Below, one piece after another: positions 7,055-42,474 of a stretch of 64,000 bases of DNA (position 1 is its first letter; every line of letters starts with the position of its first letter). The position numbers were made by a program, and so were the translations under genes. The notes under the pieces are model-generated. The model was not told the origin of the DNA. It searched no databases and saw nothing but the letters and a program-made list of their open reading frames with translations. The DNA is taken from positions 1 through 64,000 of the IMG/VR virus record IMGVR_UViG_3300048672_001051; one strand, 5' to 3'.

Positions 7055-7609
7055 ATGTTTATGAACCCAGTTGTGAGCCAAGAAGACCGCAAACTAATAG
7101 GGCACTTAGTTAAGAAGAAAAAACAGAGTGGTAAATACACACACGTTTACTACAATAAAAAAGATTCTAATAACAACTTAAAATATGTAACTGGTGAATT
7201 CTACTCTGCTAAGAATAAAGCACATATGACATATAGGTCATCTTACGAACTGAAGTTCTTACAAACATTAGAAAGTAATGATGACGTTGAAAGATATGCG
7301 TCTGAGTGCTTTACACTACCATATATAAATATTAGTGGTGTAAGAAAAACATATATACCAGACCTGTTAGTTGTATATAAGTCGGGTAAAATTGATATTT
7401 GTGAAATTAAGCCTAAGGCTATGCTAGTTAACGGTGACGTTCAAAGAAAAGCTGCAGCCTGTAGGCAGTTTATAATCTCTAATTTTAAAGGTATTGACTG
7501 CCAGTATAAATTTGTCACAGAAGATGACTTATTTATAAACAGTACGGATTATTCAAAGTTTTTAAAAAGTATAAAAGTAGGTAAAGAATACCATGGCAAC
7601 CAATCGTGA
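7055..7609 (+). CDS. TnsA-like PD-(D/E)xK endonuclease / head-completion nuclease (T4 gp4-like)
   Basis: YRSSYE, YASE.FTLPY, TYIPDLLV, EIKP motifs. Confidence 0.8.
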   Translation: MFMNPVVSQEDRKLIGHLVKKKKQSGKYTHVYYNKKDSNNNLKYVTGEFYSAKNKAHMTYRSSYELKFLQTLESNDDVERYASECFTLPYINISGVRKTYIPDLLVVYKSGKIDICEIKPKAMLVNGDVQRKAAACRQFIISNFKGIDCQYKFVTEDDLFINSTDYSKFLKSIKVGKEYHGNQS

Positions 7610-8984
7610 TCGAATAATATCTTTAGATATCGAGACGACTGGACTACAACCAACAGACCATATATGGTCTGTTGGTATTGCTACTCAAGCGACTCGTAAG
7701 AAAGATAGAGAGATATTTTTAAGTGGTATAACACAATCTAAGAGTAAATCAAAAGCTATAGATGACCTGTTTAACTTACACTCAAACTCTTTTGGACTAT
7801 CTCAACTTGAAAGCGGAGCTTTTGAAGCTTTTGGTAAAGCTGCTGAATCATCAAAGACAGCTAGTTTTAACAGTGCTATTAAAGACTTAAGCGACATGGC
7901 TGCACAAGCAGATGTAATGCTAATCCAAAACGTTAATTTTGAAGATAGGTTTTTAAGTAGCCAAATAACTCCAAAAGCTAAACAAATGCTTACAGATAAA
8001 CTTTATTTTGATACACCAAGTAGCCGTCGGAGATTATTCCAAGAGAGTGCTAGTGTTGAAAATGCTAGAGCTTTGACTATGGCTTCAGGGGAGACTCTTC
8101 GTCAAAGTTTAAAAGATGGCTCCGATGTAGACTCTTACATAGTTAAGCATTCACAGGCTAGCCAAGAACTAATGAGCACTATTAGCCAAACAATTACTGA
8201 CGCTAAGTCCGCTGGAAAAATTGCGGTAGTAGATTTGCTAGATATTACTAGAAGTACTTACGCCGTAGCTGCAGAGAAGGGTTTGGTAAATCCTCAGCAT
8301 ATTGGCATGCTTTCCAATATGGATTTTATAACTAGAGGTTTATTAGGCAGGCCTGAGACGCACAGAGCACTAATGGATGGTCAAGATCAGATACATGCTT
8401 ATAACATATTTAAGGATGGCTATGACGAGCTACTTAAAACTGGTAAATTTACACCAGAACTTCAAAAATTAGCTGATAGTGTAGACTCCGGTTTTCATGA
8501 AATAAACTATAACTTTTTAAAGAGTGTTCGAAGCCACATTGAAGATATTGGCGCTAAGGATAAGCCGACAAATGTTAAAGACGCTGTAACTAAAGTGCTT
8601 GGGCGTACAGATCAAATAGACGAAGGCCTAAATGGTTTTGGTCGTGAATCATACGCTACTAGTCTGTTTGGCAAAGATAAGCCCGAGGCTTTAGCACAAG
8701 TTAACGCTGATTTAAAGTTAATCCAAAATGGCGAACATCAAGCTGTAATTGACCAGCACGCTTATGCTGCAGCGGCGGCTAAAAAAGAAAGTAAACTTAC
8801 AACAAAAGGTAAGATAGGCTTAGGAGTAGCCGCTGTTGTTGGGTTAGGAATTGTTTCCACGCTAGGCGATACGAGTAGAAGAGAGCAAAAACATAATACT
8901 TATAATGAGTTATATGATGAACAATATGTCGGTACAGCTTTAGCAGACTGGCAGGATAGAAATAAAAGTCACAGGATGTCTTAA
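7593..8984 (+). CDS. DEDDh (DnaQ-like) 3'-5' exonuclease-domain protein with a C-terminal hydrophobic helix
   Basis: ExoI LDIETTGL, ExoII-like QNVNFE, ExoIII HRALMD; C-terminal IGLGVAAVVGLGIVSTLG. Confidence 0.75.
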   Translation: MATNRDRIISLDIETTGLQPTDHIWSVGIATQATRKKDREIFLSGITQSKSKSKAIDDLFNLHSNSFGLSQLESGAFEAFGKAAESSKTASFNSAIKDLSDMAAQADVMLIQNVNFEDRFLSSQITPKAKQMLTDKLYFDTPSSRRRLFQESASVENARALTMASGETLRQSLKDGSDVDSYIVKHSQASQELMSTISQTITDAKSAGKIAVVDLLDITRSTYAVAAEKGLVNPQHIGMLSNMDFITRGLLGRPETHRALMDGQDQIHAYNIFKDGYDELLKTGKFTPELQKLADSVDSGFHEINYNFLKSVRSHIEDIGAKDKPTNVKDAVTKVLGRTDQIDEGLNGFGRESYATSLFGKDKPEALAQVNADLKLIQNGEHQAVIDQHAYAAAAAKKESKLTTKGKIGLGVAAVVGLGIVSTLGDTSRREQKHNTYNELYDEQYVGTALADWQDRNKSHRMS

Positions 8985-9746
8985 ATGAGTAACAGAGCTA
9001 AATTAGACGAATTACTTACGCTTAACCCAGATCTTAAATTTGACTCTAAACGTTTTGATACTTTAAAAGATAAAGATCAGAAAAAATTATTAAAAATGTT
9101 ATCCAGCGATGCCTCTAAAGGTAATGGTACTTATAAATTTACCGCAGGTGTTAATACAAACTTTGATTCAAAAGGTACAGCTGGCGTTTTAAACAAAGCA
9201 AAAGCTATGGTTAACCACACTATAGGGCCAAGTGCCGTAGAGGCCTACGCAAACTCTTTTGGATTTATGACCTCAGGTCAGCGTGCAATGAGTGCAAACT
9301 CATCAATGCTTGGTAAATTGTCCTACAAAGCAATACCTGCCTTTGGTGCATTTACAGCGCTATCTGGCGCTGTAGACGGTGAAGATCCGTTCGAGTATGT
9401 GGGTGAACAGATGGCCTTTGGTGGTGCTACGCAGGGTTATAGACTCGGCAGCACACTTGGAACTAGTACGATGGGTCGATTCGGTGCAGGCTTAGTTGGA
9501 GGAGCATTTATAGGCGCTGCTGTTTACGGAGGTTTTGCTGCGGCAAAAGACTTATCAAGTAACACTTCAAGTATAGCTAAAGCTGCCAAAAAAATGTACA
9601 CAAAAGAATTAAGTGTCGCATCATTTGACAATGATAAAACCTTAACAATGAGGCAAGCCGCATTAAGTAAGTTGAGTAATAGCGCGATAAACGACAGAGG
9701 ACTACTTTTAGGTAACGAAGCAATGATACTGCGAGGTTCATTATAA
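8985..9746 (+). CDS. Gly/Ala-rich hydrophobic protein, putative virion/ejected protein
   Basis: Glycine-zipper-like segments FGAGLVGGAFIGAAVYGGFAAA and AIPAFGAFTALSGAV; coupled to terL by TAATG. Confidence 0.5.
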   Translation: MSNRAKLDELLTLNPDLKFDSKRFDTLKDKDQKKLLKMLSSDASKGNGTYKFTAGVNTNFDSKGTAGVLNKAKAMVNHTIGPSAVEAYANSFGFMTSGQRAMSANSSMLGKLSYKAIPAFGAFTALSGAVDGEDPFEYVGEQMAFGGATQGYRLGSTLGTSTMGRFGAGLVGGAFIGAAVYGGFAAAKDLSSNTSSIAKAAKKMYTKELSVASFDNDKTLTMRQAALSKLSNSAINDRGLLLGNEAMILRGSL

Positions 9747-11941
9747 TGGCAGCAATTGATCTATTTGAGATGAGTTGGAAAGACTATTTAGAAATTAAAG
9801 GTTTTAATAAACAAAAAGAAGAAACGATGGCAGAGACGTGTAGGAAATGCCGAGAAGATCAACTTAAAAAACATAAAAAAATTACTATAAAATGTACTGG
9901 CGAGCGTACGATAGAGCATGAATTTACTCAGAAGTATGGTGAAAAAACAGCGAAGGCTGTATTAGCTCATTTGCAAGACGACCCGACAGAGATGCTGCAA
10001 GCGTCGTCTGCATACAATCCTTACGATTTTATGCGCGCAAATATTACAGACCCTAAATTGTTTAACCCACGCTGGTACCAAGAGAAAGCTGTACTTTGCT
10101 CTGCGACTAAAAAAGTTTTACGGATGGGTCGTCGCTGTATAGCAAAAGATGAACTTGTACTGATGGCCGATTACAGTTATAAAAAAATTCAAGATATAGA
10201 GCCTGGCGATTATGTAATAAGTAATAAGTATGACAAAGCTACTACACAAATAGTTACACATAAATACAATAACGGTGTTCAGCCGGTGTATGAAGTGCTC
10301 ACAGAGAAAAATCATAAAGTAAGATTAACCGAAGACCATGAAATTTTAACTAAACGAGGCTGGGTGACAATAGCTCAAGGCTTATCTAATGTTGACTATA
10401 TAAGTACTCTAGCCTCAAAAGAGTCTACAGATTATGAGTATTTACGAGTAAAGAGTATAACTCCGATAGGTCTTCAAGAAGTCTACGATATTACAGTTCC
10501 AGGTACTAATAACTTCACTGTAGAAGGACTGACGGTACACAATTGCGGTAAGACATACTCTATGGTTGTTGGTATGTTGCACAACTTACTAACAAAGCCT
10601 GGGTACACAGTACTAATAGCTGCACCGCAAATAACTATGATTGACGAGATAGTTAGCGCTTGCGAAGAAATCTGTAGGCAGCTTAAGACAGAGTATCCTA
10701 TAGTTAGAAATTCTTCTAGCCCTATTATAGAAATTGAGTTTAATAATGGCTCTATAATAAAAGGTGTTACAACAGCCAACGACGCAAAATCTGCTCGTGG
10801 TAAAAGCGCCGATTTGATTTGGCTAGAAGAAGCTGACTTTATTGAAAAGAAGGCCTTAAACTCTATTCTAGGGGTTTTGGCAGATAGGTCAGACATCGAA
10901 CTTTGGGTCTCTTCAACACCAATTGGTGAAAGAAATCTTTACAGTCTAGCTCAAAGACCAGATATAAGAGAATTTCACTATCCAACTTTTGTTGTTCCCC
11001 ACTACGAGTCTGAAAACTTAGACGAGTTTTTCCGTGGAGCAATGACACAGTCTGGTTATGTACAAGAAGTGATGGCTGAGTATGGTGTAGACGTTGATAG
11101 TGTTTTCCAGATCATGTTTATTGAGGAGAGTACTGAACTAGAGCGAGATCCTTACTATTCAGTAGAGAGTGTGTTAGCTAACAGACAGGATTTTATAGTC
11201 TTTATAGGTGTAGATTGGAACCATGATAAAGTTGGTACAAGAATTGTTGTAACAGCTTACTCACGTTCAAGAAATATTTTATTTATTGTTAAGAAAGAGA
11301 AAGTGTCATCAGTTGGTTGGACACAAGCATTAGCTGTGGAGTCTATAGTTAATTTAAACAGATTGTTTGCAGCTGATCATATATATGTAGATGAAGGTTT
11401 TGGTATAGGCCAAGTTACAGAGCTTAGAAAAAAAGGTGTAGAAGCCTATGGTAAAGTTGCAAACGATCATCCAGATTTAAAATTAGAGCAGACTGTATCA
11501 GTGCAATTTGGATCTAGTATAAAAATACATGATCCTATAACTGGTGAAGTTTACAGCAAGCGTGTTAAACAATACATGGTTGAGAATTTATCAAACACGC
11601 TAGAGAAGAAATCTTTATACTTCTCAAGTGTTGAAGATAATGATATAATCATGCAAATGAAGAACTATCTTATAAAAAATGTTTCTGTTAACGGAGCCAA
11701 GTCTTATAGTTTTAGAGATAAGCAAATAGCTGATCACGACTTAGATGCATTTATGTTGACTATCTACGCGTTTAATGTAGAATACGGGGATTATATAAGA
11801 CCACAAAGTCTAGAGTATGCGGCAGGATTTGGCAAAGAATTGCTAGAGCCTGCGCTGAAAATGGATAGTCTTTACGACGCAATTGGTGTATATGTCTCCC
11901 GTACATCAAAATCAAAATTTAAACCAAAACGTAAATGGTAG
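9746..11941 (+). CDS. terL: Terminase large subunit, intein-containing
   Basis: PRWYQ adenine-binding motif, Walker A RMGRR/CGKT split by an intein, Walker B LIWLEEAD, motif III SSTP, nuclease FIGVDWN / YVDEG / DHDLDA. Confidence 0.93.
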   Translation: MAAIDLFEMSWKDYLEIKGFNKQKEETMAETCRKCREDQLKKHKKITIKCTGERTIEHEFTQKYGEKTAKAVLAHLQDDPTEMLQASSAYNPYDFMRANITDPKLFNPRWYQEKAVLCSATKKVLRMGRRCIAKDELVLMADYSYKKIQDIEPGDYVISNKYDKATTQIVTHKYNNGVQPVYEVLTEKNHKVRLTEDHEILTKRGWVTIAQGLSNVDYISTLASKESTDYEYLRVKSITPIGLQEVYDITVPGTNNFTVEGLTVHNCGKTYSMVVGMLHNLLTKPGYTVLIAAPQITMIDEIVSACEEICRQLKTEYPIVRNSSSPIIEIEFNNGSIIKGVTTANDAKSARGKSADLIWLEEADFIEKKALNSILGVLADRSDIELWVSSTPIGERNLYSLAQRPDIREFHYPTFVVPHYESENLDEFFRGAMTQSGYVQEVMAEYGVDVDSVFQIMFIEESTELERDPYYSVESVLANRQDFIVFIGVDWNHDKVGTRIVVTAYSRSRNILFIVKKEKVSSVGWTQALAVESIVNLNRLFAADHIYVDEGFGIGQVTELRKKGVEAYGKVANDHPDLKLEQTVSVQFGSSIKIHDPITGEVYSKRVKQYMVENLSNTLEKKSLYFSSVEDNDIIMQMKNYLIKNVSVNGAKSYSFRDKQIADHDLDAFMLTIYAFNVEYGDYIRPQSLEYAAGFGKELLEPALKMDSLYDAIGVYVSRTSKSKFKPKRKW
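10136..10543 (+). mobile_element. Mini-intein (136 aa) in the TerL Walker A motif
   Basis: CIAKDELV...LTEDHEIL...VYDITV...FTVEGLTVHN followed by CGKT. Confidence 0.93.
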
Positions 11942-11948
11942 CATTAAA

Positions 11949-12383: not shown

Positions 12384-12385
12384 TA

Positions 12386-12652
12386 TTGACAAACACTATT
12401 ACAGATGAGTCTTTACAGTTATTGTTAATAGACTCTAAGAATGCATCAGAAGCTCTCAAAGCTAAGTTAGCTACTGTTGTAGTGCCTGTTAGTTCAAAGA
12501 CTTTGCCAGACGTTATAAAAGCCATCTCCGAACTCTTCGGAGATGGCTTTATTGACAACCAAGGAAATTCTCAAATTTCCTATGATATGTATTTAGCCTG
12601 CGTAAAATATTTAAGAACAATAGGCGCCCTAAAAGGTGAGGAGTATGTATGA
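12386..12652 (+). CDS. Hypothetical protein
   Basis: TTG start with ggag upstream; ATGA overlap with the next gene. Confidence 0.55.
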   Translation: MTNTITDESLQLLLIDSKNASEALKAKLATVVVPVSSKTLPDVIKAISELFGDGFIDNQGNSQISYDMYLACVKYLRTIGALKGEEYV

Positions 12653-13209
12653 CTAACACATCAGCAGCGATGTTTACAGATCAAGCTGAAGTTATAAGAA
12701 TGCAAAAACAACGTGCAGAGCTGTACACTAGAATATACCAGTATGCTGCTGAGGATTTTACAAGTATAGCTGATTTTCAACAATTTTATAGTTTATCGGC
12801 TGTGTGGATGCAATCTCTTGAAACTCAATTGCAAACACTTATGCAAATAATCTCTGTACACGTTCACGATGTCCCGCCGCACTCACACCCGATTGAACCA
12901 CATACACATATTAGCTCAGCGCCAGGTTCGCCCACTAGTCCAAATATTGGTGGTGTAATCACGATGCCTACTGGTTTAGTTACTAACTTAAGTACAAACA
13001 CGTCTCAGATAGTCTGGCGGCCATTAGCTAAACCTACATTTATTAATACAACTTTAGCTATACCAAATATCGAAGGTAATAAGATAGTAGTAGGTGTTGG
13101 TGCTGAGGGTGATGTATTTCCAGAGCAGCGTAGGCTACGTGTAGCTCCAATATTACTTAAACCTACATTGCCGCCAATAATTAGCAGCGCTTTAAAAGGA
13201 TCTTTATGA
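12649..13209 (+). CDS. Hypothetical virion protein with a triple HxH motif
   Basis: Strong SD (aggtgaggag); helical N-terminus, then HVH..HSH..HTHISSAPGSPTSP. Confidence 0.55.
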   Translation: MTNTSAAMFTDQAEVIRMQKQRAELYTRIYQYAAEDFTSIADFQQFYSLSAVWMQSLETQLQTLMQIISVHVHDVPPHSHPIEPHTHISSAPGSPTSPNIGGVITMPTGLVTNLSTNTSQIVWRPLAKPTFINTTLAIPNIEGNKIVVGVGAEGDVFPEQRRLRVAPILLKPTLPPIISSALKGSL

Positions 13210-15080
13210 TTATAATCGAACCAATTGTAGAAAATACGTCGTCTGGTGAGGCGTTGCAACAACTACAACTTATAGTTAATACATTTACTGACGCCATAGA
13301 AAAAAATAATTGCAACTTAAAATTAGTTATAGGTTTTCACCAACAACTAGATGATGCCATACGAGATGTTGAAGATTTAAATGTAGCTTTGCAACCTGAT
13401 ATTAAAGGTACACTAAAAGCTACGCCGACCTACACTTACTACACGGTAGACCCTAGCAGGTTTATTGATGATGTCATAACAATAAACGACTCTTCTAAGT
13501 ATTTAAAGCAAAAGTGCATTGATTGTAAATTAAGGTTCCCTACTGTGAAATTTGACAACAGACTTAAATTTTCATTTGATAAACTTTTTGAAATAAACAT
13601 AGCCTACTCTAAAATTTTTACAGATTTCCAAAAGCCTAATATCTGTCACTTAGCTTATGCTATGGAGTCTAGTTGCATACCAGATTTAATAAAATTAATA
13701 GCACTACTTTTAAATGCATATATAGCAATACTAGCTTTTAAAAAGCTATCAGGTTTTACTTTAACTGCTTTCATAAAAGGACTTATACTTAGCCTTCTAG
13801 GTAAAATAATTGGAAGCATATCTGTCTCAGTAAACTTTTCAAATACAGGCTTACCTTGCGTGCTTGCTGCTATTGAGAATATTGCGTCAGCTATTCCAAG
13901 CCCTGATAATTTAAGATCACAGATTAGTGCAAACATAAGAGATGAAACTGGATTTTATGCAGACAAGCAAATTGGCAATAATACAGAACTTTTAAGACAA
14001 CTAAATAGTGGTGAAATAGCTCAAGAAGAGTATGATAAAATTATAACTGACTACCAACAGTCGGAAGTTATTGAGAAAAATTACTACAGTAATTTGCAAG
14101 AGTCTGTAGGCACTGGATTAAATAAATCTACTAGTTTTTTAAAAAGCATTGAAGGTAGCGTAAGTGATGTTGAAAATGGTATCTCAGATATATTTAAGTT
14201 TGCAAACGATGTTGTTACAGAAGCTCAAGCAGAATTAAATTCTTTTATTGAATCTATATTTGGAATAATAACTTATTTTGAATGTGAAATCAGCCGAACT
14301 ACTGCAGACTTTACAGTTATTTTAGAACTTGCAACAAAAATAACTAATTTAATAAATGCAATAAGTGCAATAGTTGTTGTTCTAGCTAAAAAACAACTAG
14401 GTGGTAAGCTGTGTAAAGAGACTAGCCTAAATTCTAAATATTCAAATGACACAACAGTTAATTTTACAGCAGAAGATATTAAAGATATTGTACAAGAGTA
14501 TACAGGTGTTATAAGTAAGTTAGAAGATGCAGACGGTATTAGTGTACTAATATACGAGCAGCCAATTAGGCAAATTCTTCCAAAGTTAGATTTATTTAGT
14601 TGTAATTTAGAGGAGTTTACTAAAGGCCATGAGTTAGATAATATTGTAGATGCAGTTGTTAAAGATCTAATTGAATCTGGAGGTAACTCTTCACTTAATC
14701 TTGATAATAATGTTGACGGAGACACCTACACACAGCCAGATAAGCAGTACATACGTAAATTCGACATACCAGGATATACTCCAAGTACTACAGACAGTGA
14801 AGAAGATTATGCAGATGCTGTTAAACAGCAAGCAGAAGAAACCTACTCAAATTATATAACAGAGGTTCGCGAGCTACTTGACTTTATTTACAATAACCCA
14901 TTAAACTCTGTCCAAGACGACTACACAGATAAAGAAGAAGTTACGGCCGAGTCTGATGACATAGTTAATATGTTTAATAACTTGAAAAGTAATAAAGTGA
15001 CTGAGAACTTATCTAATCAACAAAAAGAGTGCCGGGACATTGATGATGTTCTAGCCATGCTTAAAAATTTTACATTCTAA
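13206..15080 (+). CDS. Hypothetical protein with hydrophobic helices and an acidic C-terminus
   Basis: 624-aa ORF coupled by ATGA; LIKLIALLLNAYIAILAF and FIKGLILSLLGKIIG segments; scattered Cys. Confidence 0.6.
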   Translation: MIIIEPIVENTSSGEALQQLQLIVNTFTDAIEKNNCNLKLVIGFHQQLDDAIRDVEDLNVALQPDIKGTLKATPTYTYYTVDPSRFIDDVITINDSSKYLKQKCIDCKLRFPTVKFDNRLKFSFDKLFEINIAYSKIFTDFQKPNICHLAYAMESSCIPDLIKLIALLLNAYIAILAFKKLSGFTLTAFIKGLILSLLGKIIGSISVSVNFSNTGLPCVLAAIENIASAIPSPDNLRSQISANIRDETGFYADKQIGNNTELLRQLNSGEIAQEEYDKIITDYQQSEVIEKNYYSNLQESVGTGLNKSTSFLKSIEGSVSDVENGISDIFKFANDVVTEAQAELNSFIESIFGIITYFECEISRTTADFTVILELATKITNLINAISAIVVVLAKKQLGGKLCKETSLNSKYSNDTTVNFTAEDIKDIVQEYTGVISKLEDADGISVLIYEQPIRQILPKLDLFSCNLEEFTKGHELDNIVDAVVKDLIESGGNSSLNLDNNVDGDTYTQPDKQYIRKFDIPGYTPSTTDSEEDYADAVKQQAEETYSNYITEVRELLDFIYNNPLNSVQDDYTDKEEVTAESDDIVNMFNNLKSNKVTENLSNQQKECRDIDDVLAMLKNFTF

Positions 15081-15093
15081 GGTCTGCTCTTTA

Positions 15094-16713: not shown

Positions 16714-16722
16714 GACTTATAA

Positions 16723-32518: not shown

Positions 32519-32519
32519 T

Positions 32520-33041
32520 ATGTTTAATAAATCCGAAAGTGTATTATTTGGTATCAACAGAGCAGTAATAGACTTAAATGGATTTTATGTAGTCTCAACT
32601 AATTGTGAAATATTTGAAAATCCTCGGTTAGTTGTAGACCTTTTAAGCCCACAAGAACTTAAACGCTACGTAAATCTATCTGAGTATTCTGTCACGGCGG
32701 AGTATGAGACTCAACAGACAATTGTGCAGGATAAACTTGTAAAAATATTCGAACACGATGGTAGTAAGTTAGACTTAAACTTAACTCCAGCCGGTGTTGT
32801 CGAATTAATAGCTGAAAGTATTGCAAATAAGTCTTGCGACTATTTAAGGCATGCCCAACGAAACTACGATTTAATTGCAGAAGAAACTTTCTTTGTAGAC
32901 CAAATGTGTGCCATAGTTTCGTACTACATGAATACAAGTTACGACATTGTAAAAACGTTACCTATTAATGAGATATTTACACGCTACGCTGTCTGCCAGA
33001 AAGCATTTCCTAACCAAGTACAACCTATAACAGAAGATTAA
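32520..33041 (+). CDS. Putative second tail assembly chaperone
   Basis: ATG right after the previous stop; PAGVVELIAESI resembles the AGTLPTL segment of the previous gene. Confidence 0.45.
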   Translation: MFNKSESVLFGINRAVIDLNGFYVVSTNCEIFENPRLVVDLLSPQELKRYVNLSEYSVTAEYETQQTIVQDKLVKIFEHDGSKLDLNLTPAGVVELIAESIANKSCDYLRHAQRNYDLIAEETFFVDQMCAIVSYYMNTSYDIVKTLPINEIFTRYAVCQKAFPNQVQPITED

Positions 33042-33043
33042 TA

Positions 33044-36000: not shown

Positions 36001-36979
36001 GCAAGGATCAGACGTGGGTATATGGACCAACCCGTATAGCCACTTTATAGAGCCTGCTATAAACAGGACTTATGGGTTATTACCTGGAGTACAAAAGCCG
36101 GCAGAAGCTTCTGAAAAAGAAGCTGTAGACGAATATTTTGATAAATTATCTTTACTTAGAGCTATAAAAATAGGTAACATTAATAGTGCTAAAAAAACTG
36201 TAATAGCATCTAACTACGCAGGTATTAGAGATAAAGAGTCTATGGATAAGCTGAGAGCAGCTTTACCAGAAAATCAAAGACTTTACTTAGAATCTTTTGC
36301 TAAAGAAAAAGATGTAGATAAAAGAAAACAAATAATAGCTATGCTGCCAACAGATATACGGCAGGCTTATGCGTCTATTTGGGCCAATATAGATATTGCA
36401 GACGCAGCTAAAGCAGCTGGCAGAGATCCTTTAAAAGCTATAGAAGATAACTATTATAAAGATACAGAAACTCTTAAAAAAACTCTAGGCATAACTTTAG
36501 ACAAAAACACTAAAGATAGAATTAAAAAATCTACCGAAACAATTACCGACCGTGGTGAAAAAGCGTCAGCTGTTAAGGAAAAAGAAGCTGAGGCAATACG
36601 TCTAGAGGCAGCGAGGCGTGAAGCACAGGCTTATGTAGACAAACAGACAGGCACTCCAAGTCAAAATTGGAAGGGCTGGGATCCACGCTTAACAACAGCC
36701 GATATAAAATTAAGAACACTAAGTATTGGCCGAGAAGACATTCACAAGTACGGTTACTGGAAATCTGATCTAGAGCGTAATGAGCGGTTAGTAGGTTTAG
36801 ACTCAGAGAGAGAAGTTATTAGAGACTTTGATAGAATAAAACAAGAGTTAAAATCGCAACAACAGCGTAAAGCTAGAATAACAACCGAATTGAATAAAAA
36901 CGGCTTCAATACATCTAAAATAGATATAGTGCCAGCGGCACAAAATACAGTCAGAATACAGGACAGAAGAACTAACTAA
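33044..36979 (+). CDS. Large virion protein with several hydrophobic segments (tape-measure-like or ejected protein)
   Basis: 1311 aa, follows the chaperones; Ala/Gly hydrophobic helices (LLALAGLPLAGAMLGA, IGALAGGLLALPFLPGALVG); charged helical C-terminus. Confidence 0.55.
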   Translation: MVNKYDGSQIDYEAYMDYKGRQKDPDPYSVTSSDIYLKKKNEQESEIMSSLIMGAGYAASAAAAAHYVNNNQTALELLNKLPGNDNLDKRLRFNRAANNTFEGIEPNFNGSLRPVSNILQSTLLNLEELSPLHILKTLQLSSAASLFTANVNLAEDVHISGDVVNNYNDYVQKLLKAQGNRELTSNDARNGFILRDGKLYGVTSNGLIDLNDIALNKARIVHTTLDIGGNRSPNRIFEKYSNIYGAAFDREAADKANLMFVGARDTASLLTDWTRAYGRYAMEIGYKTLDNPVAGFEEILNMTGLGDSKFVNNKYYQAIKNKLNISLGTGGAYDLSTRESLKITAKNIAVKSAALYVGYNILNSGLSAITGEENPYHQGLISGLAASYANMSVGFAKLWSDNFQDYKNSQEAAAEGSTSLLALAGLPLAGAMLGANTAFAQRMYHTKKHGMLSAATHFGTERTFKSDKIFSMLGLAKEEKILNRYAKIGALAGGLLALPFLPGALVGKSSDELKAEYSGEKEVAVKANRYWLAGGTAYEGENVKYFKKHIIAETIANARNKTYYESMSQKRAMDPIFSPLAYLKNPYAREEATKESMPYPVWGMNVTYGSFFGEAFQGTLGQIIKPTVINPEFLKNYVISKKDIFSLENSLIKKTLSTSESDNDNQVSDGSIANAAAEQDKLKRGARSIFSKLDEDYVTQTSEKSPDKSMIKTGDMLRKESAEIDQTKIASSAAYVAAADFTGLKGFTSSMILGSAGIDPTDYKKQLAMSGDANSAQSQIQDLNLGDMAGLGEFQRRIVPTSAASKKEYINPMKNNMPSWLPSDESKYYLDFSIGNPYDKIENGAVRLPGRGFAALNPTVKNLDPEKYPLVYQYKILADVAAGSPEQIAMRNYLLSNKDQLSETEQKIFFTSLEQTEARKEKRKFHEYTSKFERANFSAFQDVQSSLWNTITHNSESVLEPLTPFRPAAKFLHKRTAIEDYVKTQLQGSDVGIWTNPYSHFIEPAINRTYGLLPGVQKPAEASEKEAVDEYFDKLSLLRAIKIGNINSAKKTVIASNYAGIRDKESMDKLRAALPENQRLYLESFAKEKDVDKRKQIIAMLPTDIRQAYASIWANIDIADAAKAAGRDPLKAIEDNYYKDTETLKKTLGITLDKNTKDRIKKSTETITDRGEKASAVKEKEAEAIRLEAARREAQAYVDKQTGTPSQNWKGWDPRLTTADIKLRTLSIGREDIHKYGYWKSDLERNERLVGLDSEREVIRDFDRIKQELKSQQQRKARITTELNKNGFNTSKIDIVPAAQNTVRIQDRRTN

Positions 36980-36981
36980 AT

Positions 36982-39900
36982 ATGAAACTAGACAGAGAAT
37001 TATTACTTACAGCTATTGGTGGCTTAACAGGCGCAGCAGCTGTAGACAGCGAAGGTGACTTCTTTGCAGCCCCTGTAGGGGCTGCAATAGGAGCTACAGC
37101 TGCAAATTATCTTGACATCAAGACGATTGACCCTGGTCGCTTAATACAAAATAATCGCACATTGCAGTTAAGCCAAGATAAGCGACTAACCAGAGCTGAG
37201 CAGTTAAGAGAGTCTTTGACTGAATTGTATGGTGCTGGCGGAAATACTCCAGTGCATCAGTATGCTAGTCAAGTTTTAAGTAATTCTTCTGCAACTGAGT
37301 ATGACTTATCAGTAGCACTGACTCAGTTAAAGTCTACAGGCGAGTTAAGCATGCTAACAAATCCGCAAGTTAAAAGTGAGCGCCTAAGTGTTACAAAAGT
37401 TGCGCCAAATGCTAGTGATTCTGTTAAATTAGCCGCATTTGAAAACAAACTGAAAAGCCTTGGGTACACTGGAAAAAATTTAACAGATAAGCTTGCTTTA
37501 TTTGAACCGTTAATTTCAAATTCTAAAGGTTTAATTATAAACGGAGACTCTATAACTCTAGGCGAGCAAGGCACTATACGACTTACTGACAGTTTAGGCG
37601 GGAATATAACCAACGGTTCTTATTACGCCACACAAAGACTTAATCCTTTTGCTAAAGCTGCCGCAGACGGAATGAATGTTAAAAGTATGGCGGAAGCTGT
37701 AGGTATAAATTTAATTGATGCTGCTAATTCTGATGTTTTAAGAGAGACGCTTGAGAGAGGTTTTAAACAAGGTTTAAGGCCGGATGACATGCAAGCTATG
37801 CTAGCACAGAGTGACTTAGGCTTAAGTTCTAAAGTACAAAACTTTGCAGAAACTGCTTACCAATATAGTGAAGATGGTACTAGCGCCCTAGTTAAAAATA
37901 GTGCTACAGCAAGATCAGAATTGTCTGAAATAGGTATAAATAAAAGAATTTTAAACGAGAGTGATTATGGCGTAGCTTTAAACATAGATACACGTACCAA
38001 TGGCCTAAACACTAAAAATCCTTTTAAGAGACTAAACACTAACTCTCCAGATGGTGTTAGGATATCTGACTACCTGAAGACAAGAAACTATTTAACTGCG
38101 CAGAATGGTGGCTTTATACAAGAGGGTGTTAAGACTGATAAGTACACTGTAATGTCAACAGCAAAGCCTAAGCCTCTGGCTAACGCTATGGGTATGATTG
38201 AGCGTAATGCGTACACCACGGGGACTAGAGGCGATCTGCCGGGTATAAATAAAGCAAGCTTGCCTGCCGGTGTTAATGCAACAGCTGACAGTGAAGTTTT
38301 GACTGCTATGTCAAAACTTGGACTGATGCCTGAGGAGTTTAGAGGTTCAGTCCCACTTAAACGTATTACCGTCGATGCTGAGCAATTTAATGCAGTAGCA
38401 GACCGTTTAGGACTACCTGCAGATGTTAGGCTAGGAGATGGCTCTGCATTGGGCAGTAGAACGCTATTAAATCAGTTTGAACATAAAGAAACTCAGCGTT
38501 TTATCATACCTAAAAATTCAAAAGGTGAGTACGCAGTAAGCTCTGCTGTTCAGACGTTCATTGACAGCAAACTGTCAGAGGGTGTAGGTTTTACAGGTTT
38601 AATGACCATACCTAACTTAGATGAAAGATCTAAAGATTTAGAAAGAATTAAGAAACTGGAGGTTGGTTATACTCCAGAAGATATTGCTGTCTTAAAAACA
38701 AATGTTGAGAATTCTCAACAAGCTCGTAAAAAAGTTAAAGATTTATTTGTAAACGGCTTACCAAAAACAATTAGCGCAGAAGAATCTGAGTTTATAAAAA
38801 ATGCGCCAATAGCTATAGCTTTTGACCAAGAAAAATTTAACGCTACAGTTAGAAGCAGATTTAGTGGCCAAGGGACGATCACTCCAGATATACTGGACAC
38901 CTTAGAGCAACACTTACGAAAAGGTGTTGCTCTGCCAGACTTAGGACTGCAAGGAAAGGGTGCTAGAAAATTAAGACAAGCTATTGCAGAATATAAACAA
39001 GACTCCGATTTAACAAATTTAAAAAATTATCATAAATCGAAGATAATGTCTAATGTGGATTATAATGATGCTTCTGCAGTTTTAAAAGGAGCTGAGAATG
39101 GAACTCTGCCGCAAGTTACAACTGAACAGTTAGCGAAAGCTAAGCAGCAGGTGCAAAACTATTATGCTAGAATGCTTCAACTTACATCGCGTAAATCTGA
39201 TGTGCAGCATAAAGAATATTCAACTGGCATGTATAACAAACTCACAGCTATTATGGGTGAAGATGTTGTCGACACATCTAAGGTTATGGAATTATTCCAA
39301 GAGCATAACAGAGTTGCTGCGGTTCAGCCACTAGCTAATCACGAGGTTTTAGGTTTAGACGCTAAAGGCTCGCCTATAAAAGTATCGACTGAGTTTAATA
39401 AATGGAGATTCACTGGAGCTAGAGAAGTAACTGACGACTTCGGAGTTACAAGCCTAGAACTTAACTTAGAAGGCTATAGCCGAGTAGGGTCCCAAGCTAG
39501 GGTAAAATCTTTTGGGGTTAGTTCTAAACAAGCCGTAGGCATGCTCAACCAAGATATGTTTGACGTAGCTTATGCAGTGGCTGATCAATTAGAGCGTGGT
39601 CTAATTCCAGCAGAGGGCACGCTAGTTGATCCGCAAGCTTTGACTACTGATGAGAAATTAATACGTCTACTTAGCGGATTCCCCGTACCTCCTGACAAGA
39701 CAGATGGAGAGTTGTTAGGCGAGTCAATTTTAGACAGGACAACAAAGTACAATCTGATGGTCGGTAAAAATACAAGTATTATTGTAGATGCTAGTGATAC
39801 TCAAGCTTCACTTGTTAAGACACTACAAAATGATTTGAAAGCTGGTACCCTGACAACTGGCATAAACAAAGGTTTAAATGAAGCTGCTATTAGTAGTGTT

Positions 39901-42474
39901 GCTAGCCAGACATTTGATAGTAGTTCAGCTGCCAGATTAGTCTCAGCACTATCTCAAAATAAAGATGGGGCTGGCGTACTGCACTCTGCCTATTACGATG
40001 CAGCAAGAGTCGCTTATAATAGTGGTAAGTACAATACAACTGCCGGAGCTTCTTCAAGAATGTTAGACTTTTATACAAACATTGGATTTAGTCCGGTTGG
40101 TCATGCGAACGGTGAAGCTAGCTTAGCAGCATTTGGTCAAGCATATCATGAACATGTGGGTAAATATTTTAACGGGTCTGCTGGATTTAACTCAGTTGAT
40201 ATGTTTAATAACCCTGCGATACAGTCTTTTTTTAATGCAACTAATGAAACTTACCATTGGAGTAGTCTTGACAGTCGAGCTACCTACACATACGGTGCAA
40301 GATCAGGCGATAGAGGTATGTCTTGGAATGCTCAGAAAAATTTAATAAACTCTGGCTATGCACCAGAGGTGTTAGACTTATTTGGCACGCATGACGCAAA
40401 TGCTGTCTACGATTTAAAAGCTTTTAGCAACACTATGAAAAAATCTGACTCAACTATAAATAGTTTTATTGCAGATTTACCTCAAGGTAAATTTACAGAG
40501 CTAATGCAAGACTTACGCGCAGCTAAACATGAAGACTATGCAGATATTTTTACTAAACATGGCGCAAACCGCGAGCTTGTGCAAGGAGACTTTATAAGTT
40601 ACGCGCTACCCGCAAACGAGTTTGGAATTGAAACTTTACCACTTTATAAGCAGTCTACTTATCGAGTTGGAACGTATGTAACTCCAGAAGGTCAAGAGAT
40701 GCGTAAAAACTTATCTACGTTACCTTTACAAATAATTCGCGCTAGTGAAGCAGCAGCTAGAGACCCTAGCGAGCTTATGCGTGAGAGACATCTTAAAGTT
40801 TATCAAGACTTGCTGACAGAGTATACTTCGGAAATATCGAACACTATTCAAAATTCTAGCGGCAATATTCTTAAAGAGTCTACTAAACGTTATGTTGAAA
40901 ATTCTTCATACTCTATTGTTGCGCCAGCAGAAGGTCATATAAAAGACCTTGCAATTGAATATAACTTAACTGGCAAAGGTCTGCCAACAGTAGGTGTAAG
41001 TGAGGAAGGTGCTGTAGAGCGTTTAAGACTTTTTGGAGTAGACACTGAGCACAAAGATTTTAACCTTGAAAATCATATGGACGCAGATGGCAGATTGTTG
41101 GACGCAGATGGTAACAAAGTGTTTTCGATACAATCTAGAGAACCAGCTTTCTCGACAAACTCTACAAGACTAGTAAATTACACTGTCATACCAGATGCAG
41201 AAACTGCAACTAAAAATACTGTATTCCACAGTGCAGCTGACACTCATTATTCTAAATTAATGTTTGGAGACTTTGACTTTGACCACGTATTTGAATATTT
41301 TCCAAAAAGAAACTTAAGTGCAGAAGAGTACGCTAACATATTAGCTATAGGTGAGAATCAAGCTAAACTTAGTAGAAGTTCAATCGAGTTGGCTCAACAC
41401 TTAGGTGTTAAAGGGTCAGCAAAAGATATGAAAAGCTTATCAGACTTTTTAGACGAAGCGTCTAAGTCAGGGGCCACTGGTACAGAACTAAATACTGTTG
41501 CAGCAGAATTGTATGCTCAGCACTTAGAGGGTTCTGCTGTGAAAGCTGGTCAACGTAAATCGTTGACACCAACTATAACAAATTTTGCAAACTCTATATT
41601 TAAGTCTGTTGAAAAAGCATCAAGTCCTGGCACTCAATTGTTTAACGACCAAGCCACTTTAATGCACTATTTAGTCGAAAATATGATTAAGTCGCAGCAC
41701 ACTAAAACTGGTGCCCAAAATAACTCTGTAAGTGAAGTGGAGAAATTAGTAAGTGCTCGTGAGAAGTTTTTAAAAAATCCTTCTGCGTATGGTGCGCAAT
41801 ATACAGATGCATTAGATCAGCTTTTACATTCTTTCAGTGGTGATATGAATGACAGTTTAAAAGCACGGGTGACTTCAGCAGTAGATGGCATTAAGCAAGC
41901 GGAGATGATACATGCACCGAGTTTAGCTGGCAGTGTGCAACTACCAACAGATTTTGGTAGAGCAGTTGCAGCAACTGCTGGAGAGTTTAGCGACATAGTT
42001 GAAAAACTAGATGATTTTGTACATCACGCTAAAATTTTACCAGTAGACGAAGGCGCTGTAAATATTGCTAGAACTGCCAGTTTCGGGTATGATGAGATCA
42101 TGTCGAACATTAAAACAAATGTTGCTAATAATAAAGTAGTCTTGGCGTTAGCTGCCGCTGGTCTTGTAGGTACAAGTATAATTACTCAAAAGTCACCAGA
42201 CTTTAAGACTAACACTAAAGCAACAGCTAACCCGTCTTCAATGATGATGGCACCTTCTAAACAAACATATAAAGATAGGAAGGAGCAAGACACATTAAAC
42301 GGTTTCAACTACCAAACACAATCTAACTACTTAACTAATAAAGACTTTGTAAAACAAGCTGTTTCTGTTCAAGGGCAGTACACTAAAGCAAAATCTGAAT
42401 TAGATAATTCAATTAAGAGAAGTGTATTTGGTAATAATATATCTAACGTAAGAATAGAAAGTTACTATGAGTGA
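36982..42474 (+). CDS. Putative single-chain two-barrel (DPBB) RNA polymerase, probably virion-associated
   Basis: SREP (R1386) and FGDFDFDH (D1430-D1434) resemble the beta-prime RxP...DxDxD active site; LGDGS (D486) and VKSFGVSSK (K842/K849) resemble beta motifs; hydrophobic N- and C-termini. Confidence 0.65.
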   Translation: MKLDRELLLTAIGGLTGAAAVDSEGDFFAAPVGAAIGATAANYLDIKTIDPGRLIQNNRTLQLSQDKRLTRAEQLRESLTELYGAGGNTPVHQYASQVLSNSSATEYDLSVALTQLKSTGELSMLTNPQVKSERLSVTKVAPNASDSVKLAAFENKLKSLGYTGKNLTDKLALFEPLISNSKGLIINGDSITLGEQGTIRLTDSLGGNITNGSYYATQRLNPFAKAAADGMNVKSMAEAVGINLIDAANSDVLRETLERGFKQGLRPDDMQAMLAQSDLGLSSKVQNFAETAYQYSEDGTSALVKNSATARSELSEIGINKRILNESDYGVALNIDTRTNGLNTKNPFKRLNTNSPDGVRISDYLKTRNYLTAQNGGFIQEGVKTDKYTVMSTAKPKPLANAMGMIERNAYTTGTRGDLPGINKASLPAGVNATADSEVLTAMSKLGLMPEEFRGSVPLKRITVDAEQFNAVADRLGLPADVRLGDGSALGSRTLLNQFEHKETQRFIIPKNSKGEYAVSSAVQTFIDSKLSEGVGFTGLMTIPNLDERSKDLERIKKLEVGYTPEDIAVLKTNVENSQQARKKVKDLFVNGLPKTISAEESEFIKNAPIAIAFDQEKFNATVRSRFSGQGTITPDILDTLEQHLRKGVALPDLGLQGKGARKLRQAIAEYKQDSDLTNLKNYHKSKIMSNVDYNDASAVLKGAENGTLPQVTTEQLAKAKQQVQNYYARMLQLTSRKSDVQHKEYSTGMYNKLTAIMGEDVVDTSKVMELFQEHNRVAAVQPLANHEVLGLDAKGSPIKVSTEFNKWRFTGAREVTDDFGVTSLELNLEGYSRVGSQARVKSFGVSSKQAVGMLNQDMFDVAYAVADQLERGLIPAEGTLVDPQALTTDEKLIRLLSGFPVPPDKTDGELLGESILDRTTKYNLMVGKNTSIIVDASDTQASLVKTLQNDLKAGTLTTGINKGLNEAAISSVASQTFDSSSAARLVSALSQNKDGAGVLHSAYYDAARVAYNSGKYNTTAGASSRMLDFYTNIGFSPVGHANGEASLAAFGQAYHEHVGKYFNGSAGFNSVDMFNNPAIQSFFNATNETYHWSSLDSRATYTYGARSGDRGMSWNAQKNLINSGYAPEVLDLFGTHDANAVYDLKAFSNTMKKSDSTINSFIADLPQGKFTELMQDLRAAKHEDYADIFTKHGANRELVQGDFISYALPANEFGIETLPLYKQSTYRVGTYVTPEGQEMRKNLSTLPLQIIRASEAAARDPSELMRERHLKVYQDLLTEYTSEISNTIQNSSGNILKESTKRYVENSSYSIVAPAEGHIKDLAIEYNLTGKGLPTVGVSEEGAVERLRLFGVDTEHKDFNLENHMDADGRLLDADGNKVFSIQSREPAFSTNSTRLVNYTVIPDAETATKNTVFHSAADTHYSKLMFGDFDFDHVFEYFPKRNLSAEEYANILAIGENQAKLSRSSIELAQHLGVKGSAKDMKSLSDFLDEASKSGATGTELNTVAAELYAQHLEGSAVKAGQRKSLTPTITNFANSIFKSVEKASSPGTQLFNDQATLMHYLVENMIKSQHTKTGAQNNSVSEVEKLVSAREKFLKNPSAYGAQYTDALDQLLHSFSGDMNDSLKARVTSAVDGIKQAEMIHAPSLAGSVQLPTDFGRAVAATAGEFSDIVEKLDDFVHHAKILPVDEGAVNIARTASFGYDEIMSNIKTNVANNKVVLALAAAGLVGTSIITQKSPDFKTNTKATANPSSMMMAPSKQTYKDRKEQDTLNGFNYQTQSNYLTNKDFVKQAVSVQGQYTKAKSELDNSIKRSVFGNNISNVRIESYYE

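Follow-up and report, generated by a model that had tools for sequence, protein, structure and literature searches.

A predicted two-barrel RNA polymerase in the tape-measure slot of a contractile-tailed jumbo phage

The window analyzed here is a stretch of 64,000 nucleotides that represents the structural (late) arm of a 229.6-kb jumbo myophage. It is syntenic with Acinetobacter phage ME3 and, more distantly, with Bacillus phage 0305phi8-36. An original prediction, made from the sequence alone, had drawn attention to four proteins with Gly/Ala-rich hydrophobic helices, i.e. an exonuclease, a Gly-rich protein, a 1311-aa protein and an RNA polymerase (RNAP) candidate, and had proposed that they form an ejected, membrane-associated apparatus. 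The first two of these are encoded in a head-completion/terminase cluster:

7055-7609 (+), head-completion nuclease, just upstream of the exonuclease
7593-8984 (+), 463-aa DEDD-type 3'-5' exonuclease (aa 1-~265), followed by a linker, a Lys-preceded Gly/Ala hydrophobic helix and a conserved polar C-terminal tail
8805-8870 (+), the hydrophobic Gly/Ala helix of the exonuclease (aa 405-426), followed by the conserved tail (aa 427-463; 8871-8981)
8985-9746 (+), 253-aa Gly-rich protein, immediately upstream of the large terminase, with a Gly-zipper-like hydrophobic segment (aa 164-187; 9474-9545)
9746-11941 (+), large terminase subunit interrupted by an intein

The head-completion nuclease is 47% identical to the ME3 'head completion protein' gp010 and matches Pfam Tn7_TnsA-like_N (E 5.5e-9), while the terminase is recognized by Pfam Terminase_3, Terminase_6N and Intein_splicing as well as by phrog_2. 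The exonuclease, an ortholog of ME3 gp011, matches phrog_192 and scores 24.5 bits against Pfam RNase_T, just above the cut-off of 24. This assignment is supported by the residues D12, E14, N113, E117, H257 and D262, which are invariant in four orthologs. Its hydrophobic helix (KD19 1.78, KD17 2.22) contains the invariant residues K405, G417 and L418 and is followed by an invariant tail motif, YD.QY.G...RN, although the corresponding segment in ME3 gp011 is weaker. The Gly-rich protein is 36% identical to the C-terminal 200 aa of ME3 gp012, which its depositors labeled 'putative membrane protein', and an adjacent pair of orthologs is seen in L011, another of the sequences compared.

The other two proteins are encoded 23 kb away, in the tail module:

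27992-30010 (+), tail sheath
32030-33041 (+), two small overlapping genes (32030-32518 and 32511-33041) at the position of the two-gene tail chaperonin
33044-36979 (+), 1311-aa conserved protein, inferred to be a virion protein, with three Gly/Ala hydrophobic segments at aa 47-63 (33182-33232), 416-437 (34289-34354) and 488-507 (34505-34564; conserved PFLPG core)
36982-42474 (+), 1830-aa predicted single-chain two-barrel RNAP fusion protein
42467-48931 (+), 2154-aa baseplate hub protein with SLT, staphylococcal-nuclease and M23 peptidase domains and C-terminal hydrophobic segments (aa 1910-1928 and 2046-2074)

The sheath (phrog_16991, E 1.4e-64; 38.7% identity to the ME3 sheath) shows that the tail is contractile. 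The two small genes are assigned by synteny with ME3 gp033/gp034 and 0305phi8-36 ORF143/144 (PMC2147016), and the same pair is found in three divergent metagenomic contigs, L007, L009 and L010. The hub protein is recognized by Pfam SLT, SNase and Peptidase_M23 and by phrog_8809, and is equivalent to ME3 gp037 and to the gp27-like hub of 0305phi8-36, gp147. Two adjacent giant genes lie between the chaperones and the hub, where a tape-measure gene is expected. The order chaperones, ~1300-aa protein, RNAP protein, hub is seen in the window, ME3, L007 and L010, and with an extra 423-aa gene in L009. In 0305phi8-36, the same slot holds gp145 and the 'hypothetical tape measure' gp146, both of which are virion proteins by mass spectrometry (PMC2147016).

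The 1311-aa protein is homologous to gp145 and shares 38-41% identity with ME3 gp035 and with its counterparts in L007, L009 and L010. It belongs to a family of more than 239 clusters, many of which carry inteins, and its conserved C-terminal 800 aa look globular, but it has no relatives in Pfam, PHROGs or the PDB. In agreement with the original prediction, no canonical tape measure is evident: no tape-measure protein (TMP) family matches the 1311-aa or the 1830-aa protein, or 42 N-terminal parts of the latter family, and TMP PHROGs match only the M23 domain of the hub protein.

The observation underlying the prediction holds, as all four open reading frames exist as described and carry Gly/Ala-rich hydrophobic segments, at aa 408-426 of the exonuclease, aa 164-187 of the Gly-rich protein, the three positions given above in the 1311-aa protein, and aa 7-45 and 1716-1735 of the 1830-aa protein. 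The two Lys-preceded peptides singled out in the prediction lie at aa 405 of the exonuclease (nt 8805) and at aa 1716 of the 1830-aa protein (nt 42127). These segments are more than chance: under a strict definition (17-aa window, KD >= 1.3, at least 7 Gly/Ala, no charged residue), 12 of the 302 open reading frames of the genome carry one, compared to 2.5 in shuffled proteins, with the C-terminal segment of the 1830-aa protein narrowly missing this filter. They are also conserved in position, in ME3 gp012, gp035 and gp036, more weakly in gp011, and in essentially all 70 full-length members of the 1830-aa family. Most, however, are only moderately hydrophobic, and the set is not exclusive, since the hub protein and a 624-aa protein (13206-15080) have similar or stronger segments. 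That they are true transmembrane anchors is not supported, given that most fall below classical thresholds and that the ME3 depositors, who used TMHMM, labeled only gp012 a membrane protein.

The interpretation built on this observation is only partly supported. In the full model, the four proteins are ejected together and form one membrane-anchored 'ejectosome' that couples DNA entry, end processing and transcription. Several findings speak in its favor: all four proteins carry conserved segments, the exonuclease and the RNAP protein share the proposed layout of enzyme, Lys, hydrophobic helix and conserved tail, all four genes are present in ME3, and in 0305phi8-36, three small Gly/Ala-rich proteins encoded just upstream of the terminase (gp113, gp114 and gp116) are virion proteins by mass spectrometry. 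Yet the two pairs belong to different modules, and nothing links them beyond a similar kind of hydrophobic segment. Co-occurrence of the four genes, which had been suggested as a check, proved uninformative, because the whole arm is syntenic. Likewise, we found no significant homology between the exonuclease or the Gly-rich protein and gp113-116, and the only motif-level resemblance is to gp115, the one protein of this group that was not found in virions. The analogy to T7 or crAss-like phages is not supported either. The T7 ejectosome proteins gp14, gp15 and gp16 are capsid-internal core proteins, whereas the giant genes described here are tail-slot genes without homology to them, and N4 gp50 is a T7-like (right-hand) RNAP rather than a two-barrel enzyme; the similarity is therefore one of concept, i.e. 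of virion proteins ejected before the DNA, some with enzymatic cargo, that act at the envelope. A four-protein complex thus remains unproven, and we regard it as unlikely. The exonuclease and the Gly-rich protein are better described as a separate conserved pair that may be head-internal or packaging proteins, although nothing shows that they are in virions.

By contrast, the proposed RNAP is supported as an RNA-polymerase-like enzyme. Its family comprises 78 representative clusters, of which 67 are 1450-2450 aa long and the rest are shorter entries, probably fragments; in full-length members, the conserved domain lies at the C-terminal end. ME3 gp036 is an ortholog (hmmsearch E 1e-235). The following parts can be distinguished:

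37000-37116 (+), N-terminal Gly-zipper-like segment (aa 7-45)
39334-39540 (+), predicted DPBB-B barrel (aa 785-853), with K842 and K849
40879-41301 (+), predicted DPBB-A barrel (aa ~1300-1440), with the R1386-E-P1388 motif and the metal-binding D1430/D1432/D1434 (41269-41283)
41479-41619 (+), long helix (aa 1500-1546) at the place of the bridge helix, followed by a conserved VEN..KS.H helix (aa ~1552-1575), a trigger-loop candidate
42127-42186 (+), C-terminal Lys-preceded Gly/Ala hydrophobic helix (aa 1716-1735), followed by a polar tail (aa 1736-1830; 42187-42471) that ends in a conserved FG......R motif

K842 and K849 (K113 and K120 of the alignment, forming a K-x6-K motif) are invariant in 50 sequences, and R1386, P1388 and the three aspartates in alignments of 47 and of 50 sequences, these divergent homologs being of 17-48% identity. 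The DxDxD motif is conserved in ME3 gp036 as GDHDQD. Further downstream, R1525, K1526 and T1533 are nearly invariant and E1566 and K1570 invariant. The N-terminal segment is present at aa ~25-50 in 59 of 70 family members at KD19 >= 1.0, with G13, G17 and G37 invariant or nearly so, although the Pfam Gly-zipper hits are not significant (E 1.5-2.9). The C-terminal helix follows the family consensus N...NK..L..G.AAL.G.ALL.Q..P.F, with N1717 invariant, and is present about 110 aa from the end in all 70 members. Its KD19 ranges from 0.8 to 1.6, and only 3 of 70 members reach the classical 1.6.

Searches against Pfam, PHROGs and PDB profiles returned no sequence-level match to any RNAP family. Fold comparisons used two confident AlphaFold models, with pLDDT values of 77.6 (model 1) and 83.6 (model 2). 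A Foldseek search against the PDB gave 138 hits at E <= 1e-3, and all 48 rows displayed from ranks 1-50 are beta-prime, Rpo1 or AR9 RNAP chains. In independent VIA-align searches, the top 16 hits are all two-barrel RNAPs, with Z values for the two models of 10.8/12.2 for QDE-1, 9.8/9.9 for RDR2, 9.3/10.0 for Mtb beta-prime, 8.8-9.9 for the AR9 and phiKZ nvRNAPs, 8.0/10.8 for P74-26 gp62, 8.0/7.4 for crAss phi14:2 gp66 and 6.1-6.4 for P23-45 gp96. TM-scores are nevertheless low (~0.2), and the Z values are middling for a model of 800-1000 residues. DPBB-B corresponds to strands 55-124 of model 2, and QDE-1, P74-26 gp62, RDR2, crAss gp66 and P23-45 gp96 all align from model residue ~102-105 onward. 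For DPBB-A, both DPBB domains and beta-prime chains match, the former to residues 256-416 of model 1 and 574-741 of model 2 (aa ~1303-1470 of the protein). The long helix and the helix that follows it correspond to residues 771-817 and 823-842 of model 2, and beta-prime and Rpb1 alignments run through this region to model residue ~960; their naming as bridge helix and trigger loop is, however, an inference.

Given its position, the 1830-aa protein could alternatively be essentially a tape-measure or tail-lumen structural protein, whose RNAP-like fold is a catalytically irrelevant relic or belongs to a different two-barrel enzyme, such as a PolD-like DNA polymerase or an RNA-dependent polymerase. 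The best fold match, QDE-1, indeed has both RNA- and DNA-templated activity (PMC9508822), and the C-terminal layout of hydrophobic helix, polar tail and FGD-type motif resembles that of gp146. We consider this very unlikely, because the three aspartates, the two lysines and the R-E-P motif are strictly invariant across 50 sequences of ~20% identity, which indicates selection on catalysis. Moreover, almost the whole length of the protein carries conserved globular-type motifs, no TMP family matches, and PolD does not appear among the 50 rows listed by either VIA-align search. The resemblance to the 2537-aa gp146 is at motif level only (shuffle z -0.5): gp146 has no DxDxD and no significant similarity to the 1830-aa protein, so that the equivalence of the slot is positional only.

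It also appears possible, though improbable, that the protein is an RNAP but not a virion component, being simply encoded in the late operon or serving as the non-virion polymerase, with its hydrophobic segments anchoring it to the membrane or to a replication compartment during infection. The predicted clamp-bearing globular enzyme seems bulky for a tail lumen, and its packaging is inferred without proteomic evidence from ME3 or this phage. On the other hand, the gene is embedded between the tail chaperones and the hub in every context seen, a position reserved for tail-lumen proteins, both proteins of this slot in 0305phi8-36 are virion proteins, and a late-made polymerase is of little use unless it is packaged. 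The genome encodes two further DxDGD proteins near the opposite, early-looking arm. While these offer other candidates for a non-virion polymerase, they could also be the real RNAPs of this phage, which weighs against our reading.

The closest precedent is gp96 of P23-45/P74-26, a tape-measure-fused virion RNAP (Chaban et al. 2024, PMC10770324; PDB 8H2M/8H2N). It too is a single-chain two-barrel RNAP encoded in the tape-measure slot, shows no detectable sequence similarity to other RNAPs apart from the DxDxD motif, carries hydrophobic or membrane segments in the same polypeptide and comes from a genome that appears to hold further RNAP-like genes; the paralogous nvRNAP-type protein is P74-26 gp62. 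However, gp96 belongs to a siphovirus with an 800-nm non-contractile tail, and its RNAP forms the N-terminal ~1100 of 5002 residues, followed by a long TMP with a metallopeptidase. Here, the RNAP fills most of the protein (about aa 450-1700), and the M23, SLT and nuclease domains sit on the separate hub protein. Furthermore, the tail-travelling gp96 is clamp-less and flat, whereas our model has a clamp-like connector matching beta-prime clamps. Activity and virion presence are proven for gp96, but inferred for the protein described here. [quoted passage not shown] Its phage is a podovirus, its gene belongs to a block of large cargo proteins and not to a tape-measure slot, and there is no sequence similarity. 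Lastly, the QDE-1/RDR2/YonO clade (Pfam PF05183) provides the best structural matches (QDE-1 over 352 aa) and the same domain order of DPBB-B, connector, DPBB-A and long helix. PF05183 does not match this protein or anything else in the genome, and the member of this clade in 0305phi8-36, gp99, is a stand-alone gene in the early (right) arm, not a tail-slot gene.

Taken together, we consider it more likely than not that the second gene of the slot encodes a single-chain two-barrel RNAP that is carried in the virion, in which a clamp-like connector lies between the two barrels and bridge-helix-like and trigger-like helices follow, bracketed by the N-terminal Gly-zipper segment and the C-terminal hydrophobic helix with its conserved tail. 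The first gene would encode a conserved virion protein of unknown activity that always accompanies it. The reading frames, the motifs and their conservation, the predicted fold, the gene order and the homology to gp145 are established by our analysis, whereas catalytic activity, presence in the virion, ejection and the role of the hydrophobic segments are inferences from them and from precedent. A virion-borne, ejected transcription enzyme in a contractile-tailed phage is a reasonable reading. Most likely, the protein is assembled into the virion through the tail or tape-measure pathway and expelled ahead of the DNA upon sheath contraction, with its conserved Gly/Ala segments serving either to pack it in the tail lumen or to hold it at the inner membrane after ejection. 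It would then transcribe the first phage genes independently of the host polymerase, as shown for the TMP-fused vRNAP gp96 of P23-45.

The 229,656-bp IMG/VR record whose bases 1-64000 form the window is estimated to be 98% complete, and almost all long ORFs of the window lie on the + strand. Its gene order matches the left arm of the cultured Acinetobacter phage vB_AbaM_ME3 (Metrivirus, 234.9 kb) gene for gene and, more distantly, that of Bacillus phage 0305phi8-36. In addition, the first 2 kb stand out with 51% G+C, against 33-42% through most of the window; here, ORF 30-2141 has no family match, while the next ORF (2096-4000) carries YadA_head repeats (E 1.9e-20), which suggests a fibre or adhesin-like protein. 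The order shared with ME3 is:

lysozymes
4929-7052, an intein-bearing 707-aa protein (Intein_splicing plus a Hint module)
7055-7609, head-completion nuclease
7593-8984, exonuclease
8985-9746, Gly-rich protein
9746-11941, intein-bearing large terminase
portal and major capsid protein
27992-30010, tail sheath
two tube paralogues
32030-33041, two small genes at the chaperonin position
33044-36979, the 1311-aa protein
the 1830-aa protein, an RNA polymerase (RNAP) candidate
42467-48931, a 2154-aa hub with SLT, SNase and M23 domains

The original prediction had assigned Gly/Ala hydrophobic anchors to four of these proteins, the exonuclease, the Gly-rich protein, the 1311-aa protein and the RNAP candidate, and this observation proved correct: the four ORFs and the two Lys-preceded hydrophobic peptides it had singled out are exactly where it placed them, and each protein has one or more Gly/Ala-rich, uncharged hydrophobic stretches. 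With a strict definition, 12 of the 302 ORFs in the genome have such a stretch, against 2.5 in shuffled controls, and five of the twelve are in the window. The stretches are conserved in position in ME3 gp012, gp035 and gp036, and in the exonuclease family, where K405, G417, L418 and a C-terminal YD.QY.G...RN tail are invariant, although the ME3 helix is weaker. They are likewise conserved in the 1311-aa family, with a PFLPG core, and in all 70 full-length members of the 1830-aa family, which have one segment at aa ~25-50 and another ~110 residues from the end. Their hydrophobicity is modest, however: only 3 of 70 C-terminal segments reach the Kyte-Doolittle threshold of 1.6, and the ME3 depositors, who ran TMHMM, labelled only gp012 a membrane protein. 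They are therefore better described as conserved glycine-zipper-like segments than as classical membrane anchors. On hydropathy, a 624-aa protein between the terminase and the portal (13206-15080) is a better membrane-protein candidate than any of the four; it has the most hydrophobic segments in the window (KD up to 2.0, several in a row at aa 160-211 and 375-393), which are conserved in ME3 gp018, and no family match. The hub protein, too, ends with two or three hydrophobic segments (aa 1910-1928 and 2046-2074).

In Pfam and PHROG scans of the four proteins, only the exonuclease domain was found. The RNAP candidate could nevertheless be traced through its relatives. A BLAST comparison with ME3 gp036 showed that the DFDFD of the window protein aligns with DHDQD and that an upstream S-R-E-P-A motif is shared. 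An exhaustive profile search then found 78 representative clusters, all without a name or annotated as ‘hypothetical protein’, of which 67 are 1450-2450 aa long, while the remaining eleven are shorter entries, probably fragments; in the full-length members, the conserved ~750-aa domain lies at the C-terminal end. In alignments of 47 and 50 members (17-56% identity), R1386 and P1388, D1430, D1432 and D1434, E1566 and K1570 are invariant, as are, further upstream, K842 and K849 in the 50 sequences. K1477 is invariant in the 47-member alignment and nearly so in the 50-member one.

AlphaFold2 with these alignments gave confident models for aa 1050-1830 (model 1; pLDDT 77.6, with residues 60-640 mostly above 90) and for aa 730-1700 (model 2; pLDDT 83.6, pTM 0.79). 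Foldseek against the PDB returned 138 hits at E <= 1e-3, of which the 48 examined among ranks 1-50 are all RNAP beta-prime or Rpo1 chains or the AR9 phage RNAP. A structural aligner that does not rely on Foldseek placed only two-barrel RNAPs in its top 16 with either model: QDE-1 with Z 10.8 and then 12.2 over 352 residues, maize RDR2 with 9.8 and 9.9, M. tuberculosis beta-prime with 9.3 and 10.0, the AR9 and phiKZ non-virion RNAPs with 8.8-9.9, P74-26 gp62 with 8.0 and 10.8, crAss-like phi14:2 gp66 with 8.0 and 7.4, and P23-45 gp96 with 6.1-6.4. In the viral structure library BFVD (model m4c67326aa420), the best hit is the ME3 orthologue (E 5.5e-26), followed by the UniProt entry A0A7R7G2L5 (E 2.8e-9), a ‘minor tail protein’ of the uncultured Siphoviridae sp. 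ctnpt50 (E 1.5e-6), an uncharacterised protein of Microcystis phage MaMV-DC (E 7.4e-6) and giant-virus RNAP subunits. RNAP domains linked to tail proteins may therefore be more widespread.

In these models, the Asp triad falls into a predicted DPBB-A barrel (aa ~1300-1440), which matches DPBB domains and beta-prime, Rpb1 and QDE-1 chains, whereas K842 and K849 fall into a second predicted barrel, DPBB-B (aa 785-853). With the longer model, the single-chain enzymes align from the latter through to the long helices after the Asp triad, which resembles the order DPBB-B, connector, DPBB-A, bridge helix described for this superfamily (PMC10770324; PMC7824862). DPBB-A is followed by a 47-residue helix (aa 1500-1546) and a conserved VEN..KS.H helix, a region spanned by the beta-prime alignments, albeit without an established residue-level equivalence to bridge helix and trigger loop. 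Since DPBB-B was found inside the 1830-aa protein itself, we dropped the idea that the 1311-aa protein is the missing beta-like subunit.

By contrast, no sequence profile links the family to known RNAPs: the protein has no Pfam hit up to E = 10, PF05183 (RdRP) is absent from the whole genome, and a profile of the family finds no RNAP among PDB sequences. The same was reported for the P23-45 enzymes, so this does not exclude membership in the superfamily. Profile searches against all ORFs of the genome, ME3 and 0305phi8-36 found only the orthologue ME3 gp036, and a search of IMG/VR with one of the family alignments returned no confirmed locus. We conclude, with high confidence as regards the fold, that the protein is a two-barrel RNAP-type enzyme.

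While 0305phi8-36 keeps its own YonO-like RNAP, gp99, in the other arm, the present genome encodes, outside the window, two ~1200-aa orphan proteins that are candidate non-virion RNAPs:

182811-186434 of the record, - strand (locus L004)
216781-220416 of the record, - strand (locus L005)

Both have the motif order [RK]-x-P, ~45 aa, DxDGD, AKAN.G and LVQE..KH, the same order as in the tail-slot RNAP. L004 has a homologue in ME3 that appears split around an annotated endonuclease, and a weak ESM Atlas lead to a PF05183 cluster (0.81); L005 has no phage-database match. Neither gave profile hits, and hhalign of the RNAP profile against the two single sequences gave no signal; homology to the tail-slot protein is not demonstrated. 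Also outside the window (213685-216257, and 63-192 kb), tandem CAAAAG hexamers (read on the - strand) cluster just downstream of the L005 gene, and the 11-mer GATATTTTAAA occurs 11 times and the overlapping TGATATTTTAA 10 times, all on the - strand, the strand of the genes there; this is a possible promoter element.

The position of the RNAP candidate is that of a tape measure protein (TMP). In 0305phi8-36, the two-gene chaperonin is followed by gp145 (a virion protein by mass spectrometry), gp146 (the ‘hypothetical tape measure’, assigned from its length and also a virion protein) and the gp27-like hub gp147. In the window, the same slot, between the chaperonin-position genes and the hub, holds two genes, the 1311-aa protein, which is a gp145 homologue, and the RNAP protein. 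The order is the same in ME3, where the two proteins are 1263 and 1603 aa long, and in the divergent metagenomic contigs L007 and L010, and contig L009 has it with one extra gene. As the original prediction had stated, no canonical tape measure is evident: no TMP family in Pfam or PHROGs matches either giant protein, or 42 N-terminal parts of the RNAP family, and both proteins carry dense conserved aromatic and proline motifs typical of globular domains. The putative tape measure gp146 (40624-48237 of the 0305phi8-36 locus L003) has no DxDxD and no significant similarity to the RNAP protein. Its C-terminal 160 aa do have the same layout as the C-terminus of the RNAP family, a Gly/Ala hydrophobic helix, a ~100-aa polar stretch and an FGD-type motif, but only at motif level, as a local alignment was not significant (z -0.5).

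The 1311-aa protein, with more than 239 clusters of homologues, gave no match against PDB sequences, either singly or as a profile, and only unnamed clusters in the ESM Atlas. Many of its homologues carry inteins (Intein_splicing, LAGLIDADG_3, Hint_2). In L009 (4314-8624), the insert lies at the equivalent of aa 791/792, just before the block conserved as far as 0305phi8-36 and other Bacillus phages. Since inteins usually sit in essential, highly conserved sites, this hints at an important and possibly enzymatic site.

The closest worked-out case is the TMP-fused virion RNAP gp96 of P23-45, which is proposed to work at the pore formed by the tape measure while the DNA enters (PMC10770324). By analogy and by gene position, we propose that the 1830-aa protein is built into the tail lumen or baseplate region through its conserved termini, is expelled on contraction, and then transcribes the leading genome end. 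While the conserved residues, the predicted fold and the gene order are shown, the RNA-synthesizing activity of the protein, its presence in the virion and each of these steps are inferred, and the evidence for a virion location is only indirect, from the proteins in this slot in 0305phi8-36. Two points argue for caution. First, the models have a clamp-like connector: residues ~100-250 of model 1 and 420-570 of model 2 align with beta-prime N-terminal clamp regions of AR9, phiKZ, bacterial and archaeal RNAPs and with the Spt4/5-bound clamp, whereas gp96 is clamp-less and flat, a shape thought to help its passage. Second, the hydrophobic segments are weak. We hold a virion and early-transcription role with moderate confidence.

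The original prediction went further and joined all four proteins in one ejectosome-like complex at the membrane; this interpretation is only partly supported, and we consider a single four-protein apparatus unlikely. Apart from the SLT domain of the hub, no PHROG or Pfam match to internal virion proteins was found, and the genes lie in the tail slot and the terminase cluster, not in a head-core block as expected for a T7-like ejectosome (gp14/gp15/gp16). The exonuclease has the complete motif set of a DEDD-type (DnaQ-like) 3'-5' exonuclease, with Exo I (DxE), Exo II and Exo III (HxAxxD) within an RNase_T fold: PF00929 scores 24.5 bits against a cut-off of 24, and D12, E14, N113, F116, E117, H257, A259 and D262 are invariant in 4 orthologues, with Glu rather than Asp as the Exo II acidic residue. 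The Gly-rich protein is conserved and adjacent to it in ME3 and in the locus L011. Both sit between the head-completion nuclease and the terminase, and a role in DNA maturation or packaging, or as head-internal proteins, is at least as likely as one in a tail-borne complex. Nothing in our analyses ties them to the tail pair, and the long-range co-occurrence of the exonuclease with the RNAP protein rests on ME3 and, indirectly, on a 59.7-kb near relative only. In 0305phi8-36, the small Gly/Ala-rich proteins upstream of the terminase (gp113, gp114, gp116) are virion proteins, but homology to them could not be shown: an HMM of the Gly-rich protein family had no hit to gp113-116 at E <= 1. A C-terminal motif, TMRQ, then ~16 aa, then LG.E.., is shared by the Gly-rich protein, ME3 gp012 and gp115 (10316-10795 of the 0305phi8-36 locus L006), but remains a tentative lead.

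A bolder scenario, which appears improbable but cannot be excluded, is that a widespread lineage of ME3-like contractile-tailed jumbo phages has replaced or merged its tape measure with an active virion RNAP. On sheath contraction, the polymerase would be expelled through the tube together with its 1311-aa partner, its two conserved Gly-zipper helices would lodge it in the inner membrane, and it would transcribe the entering genome end, with the head-proximal exonuclease and the Gly-rich protein delivered in the same shot. This would be the first tail-lumen transcription machine in a myovirus, and it would raise the question of how tail length is set without a canonical tape measure.

Virion-delivered RNAPs let phages start transcription without the host enzyme, and known cases are N4 gp50, the phiKZ/AR9 vRNAPs, crAss gp66 and the tape-measure-fused gp96 of the siphovirus P23-45 (PMC10770324). 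TMP-fused virion RNAPs, as well as virion two-barrel RNAPs in crAss-like and phiKZ-like phages, are already known. What differs here is the contractile tail, a different domain arrangement, a constant ~1300-aa partner, and lytic and nuclease domains carried on the hub instead; a nuclease on the hub has been noted for the BtI1 relative of 0305phi8-36 as well. Neither an RNAP in ME3 nor a tail-slot RNAP in a myovirus is reported in the ME3 genome announcement, in a comparative review of jumbo phages (PMC7824862), which lists YonO-like enzymes only for 0305phi8-36 and c-st, in the supplements of PMC10770324 that we examined, or in texts found by a full-text search. A two-barrel RNAP in the tape-measure slot of this lineage would pose the questions of how a clamp-bearing polymerase fits into or passes through a tail tube and what measures the tail in these phages. 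It would also extend the idea of a tail-fused RNAP from one thermophilic siphovirus group to myoviruses, and would give a function to a family of 78 ‘hypothetical’ giant proteins.
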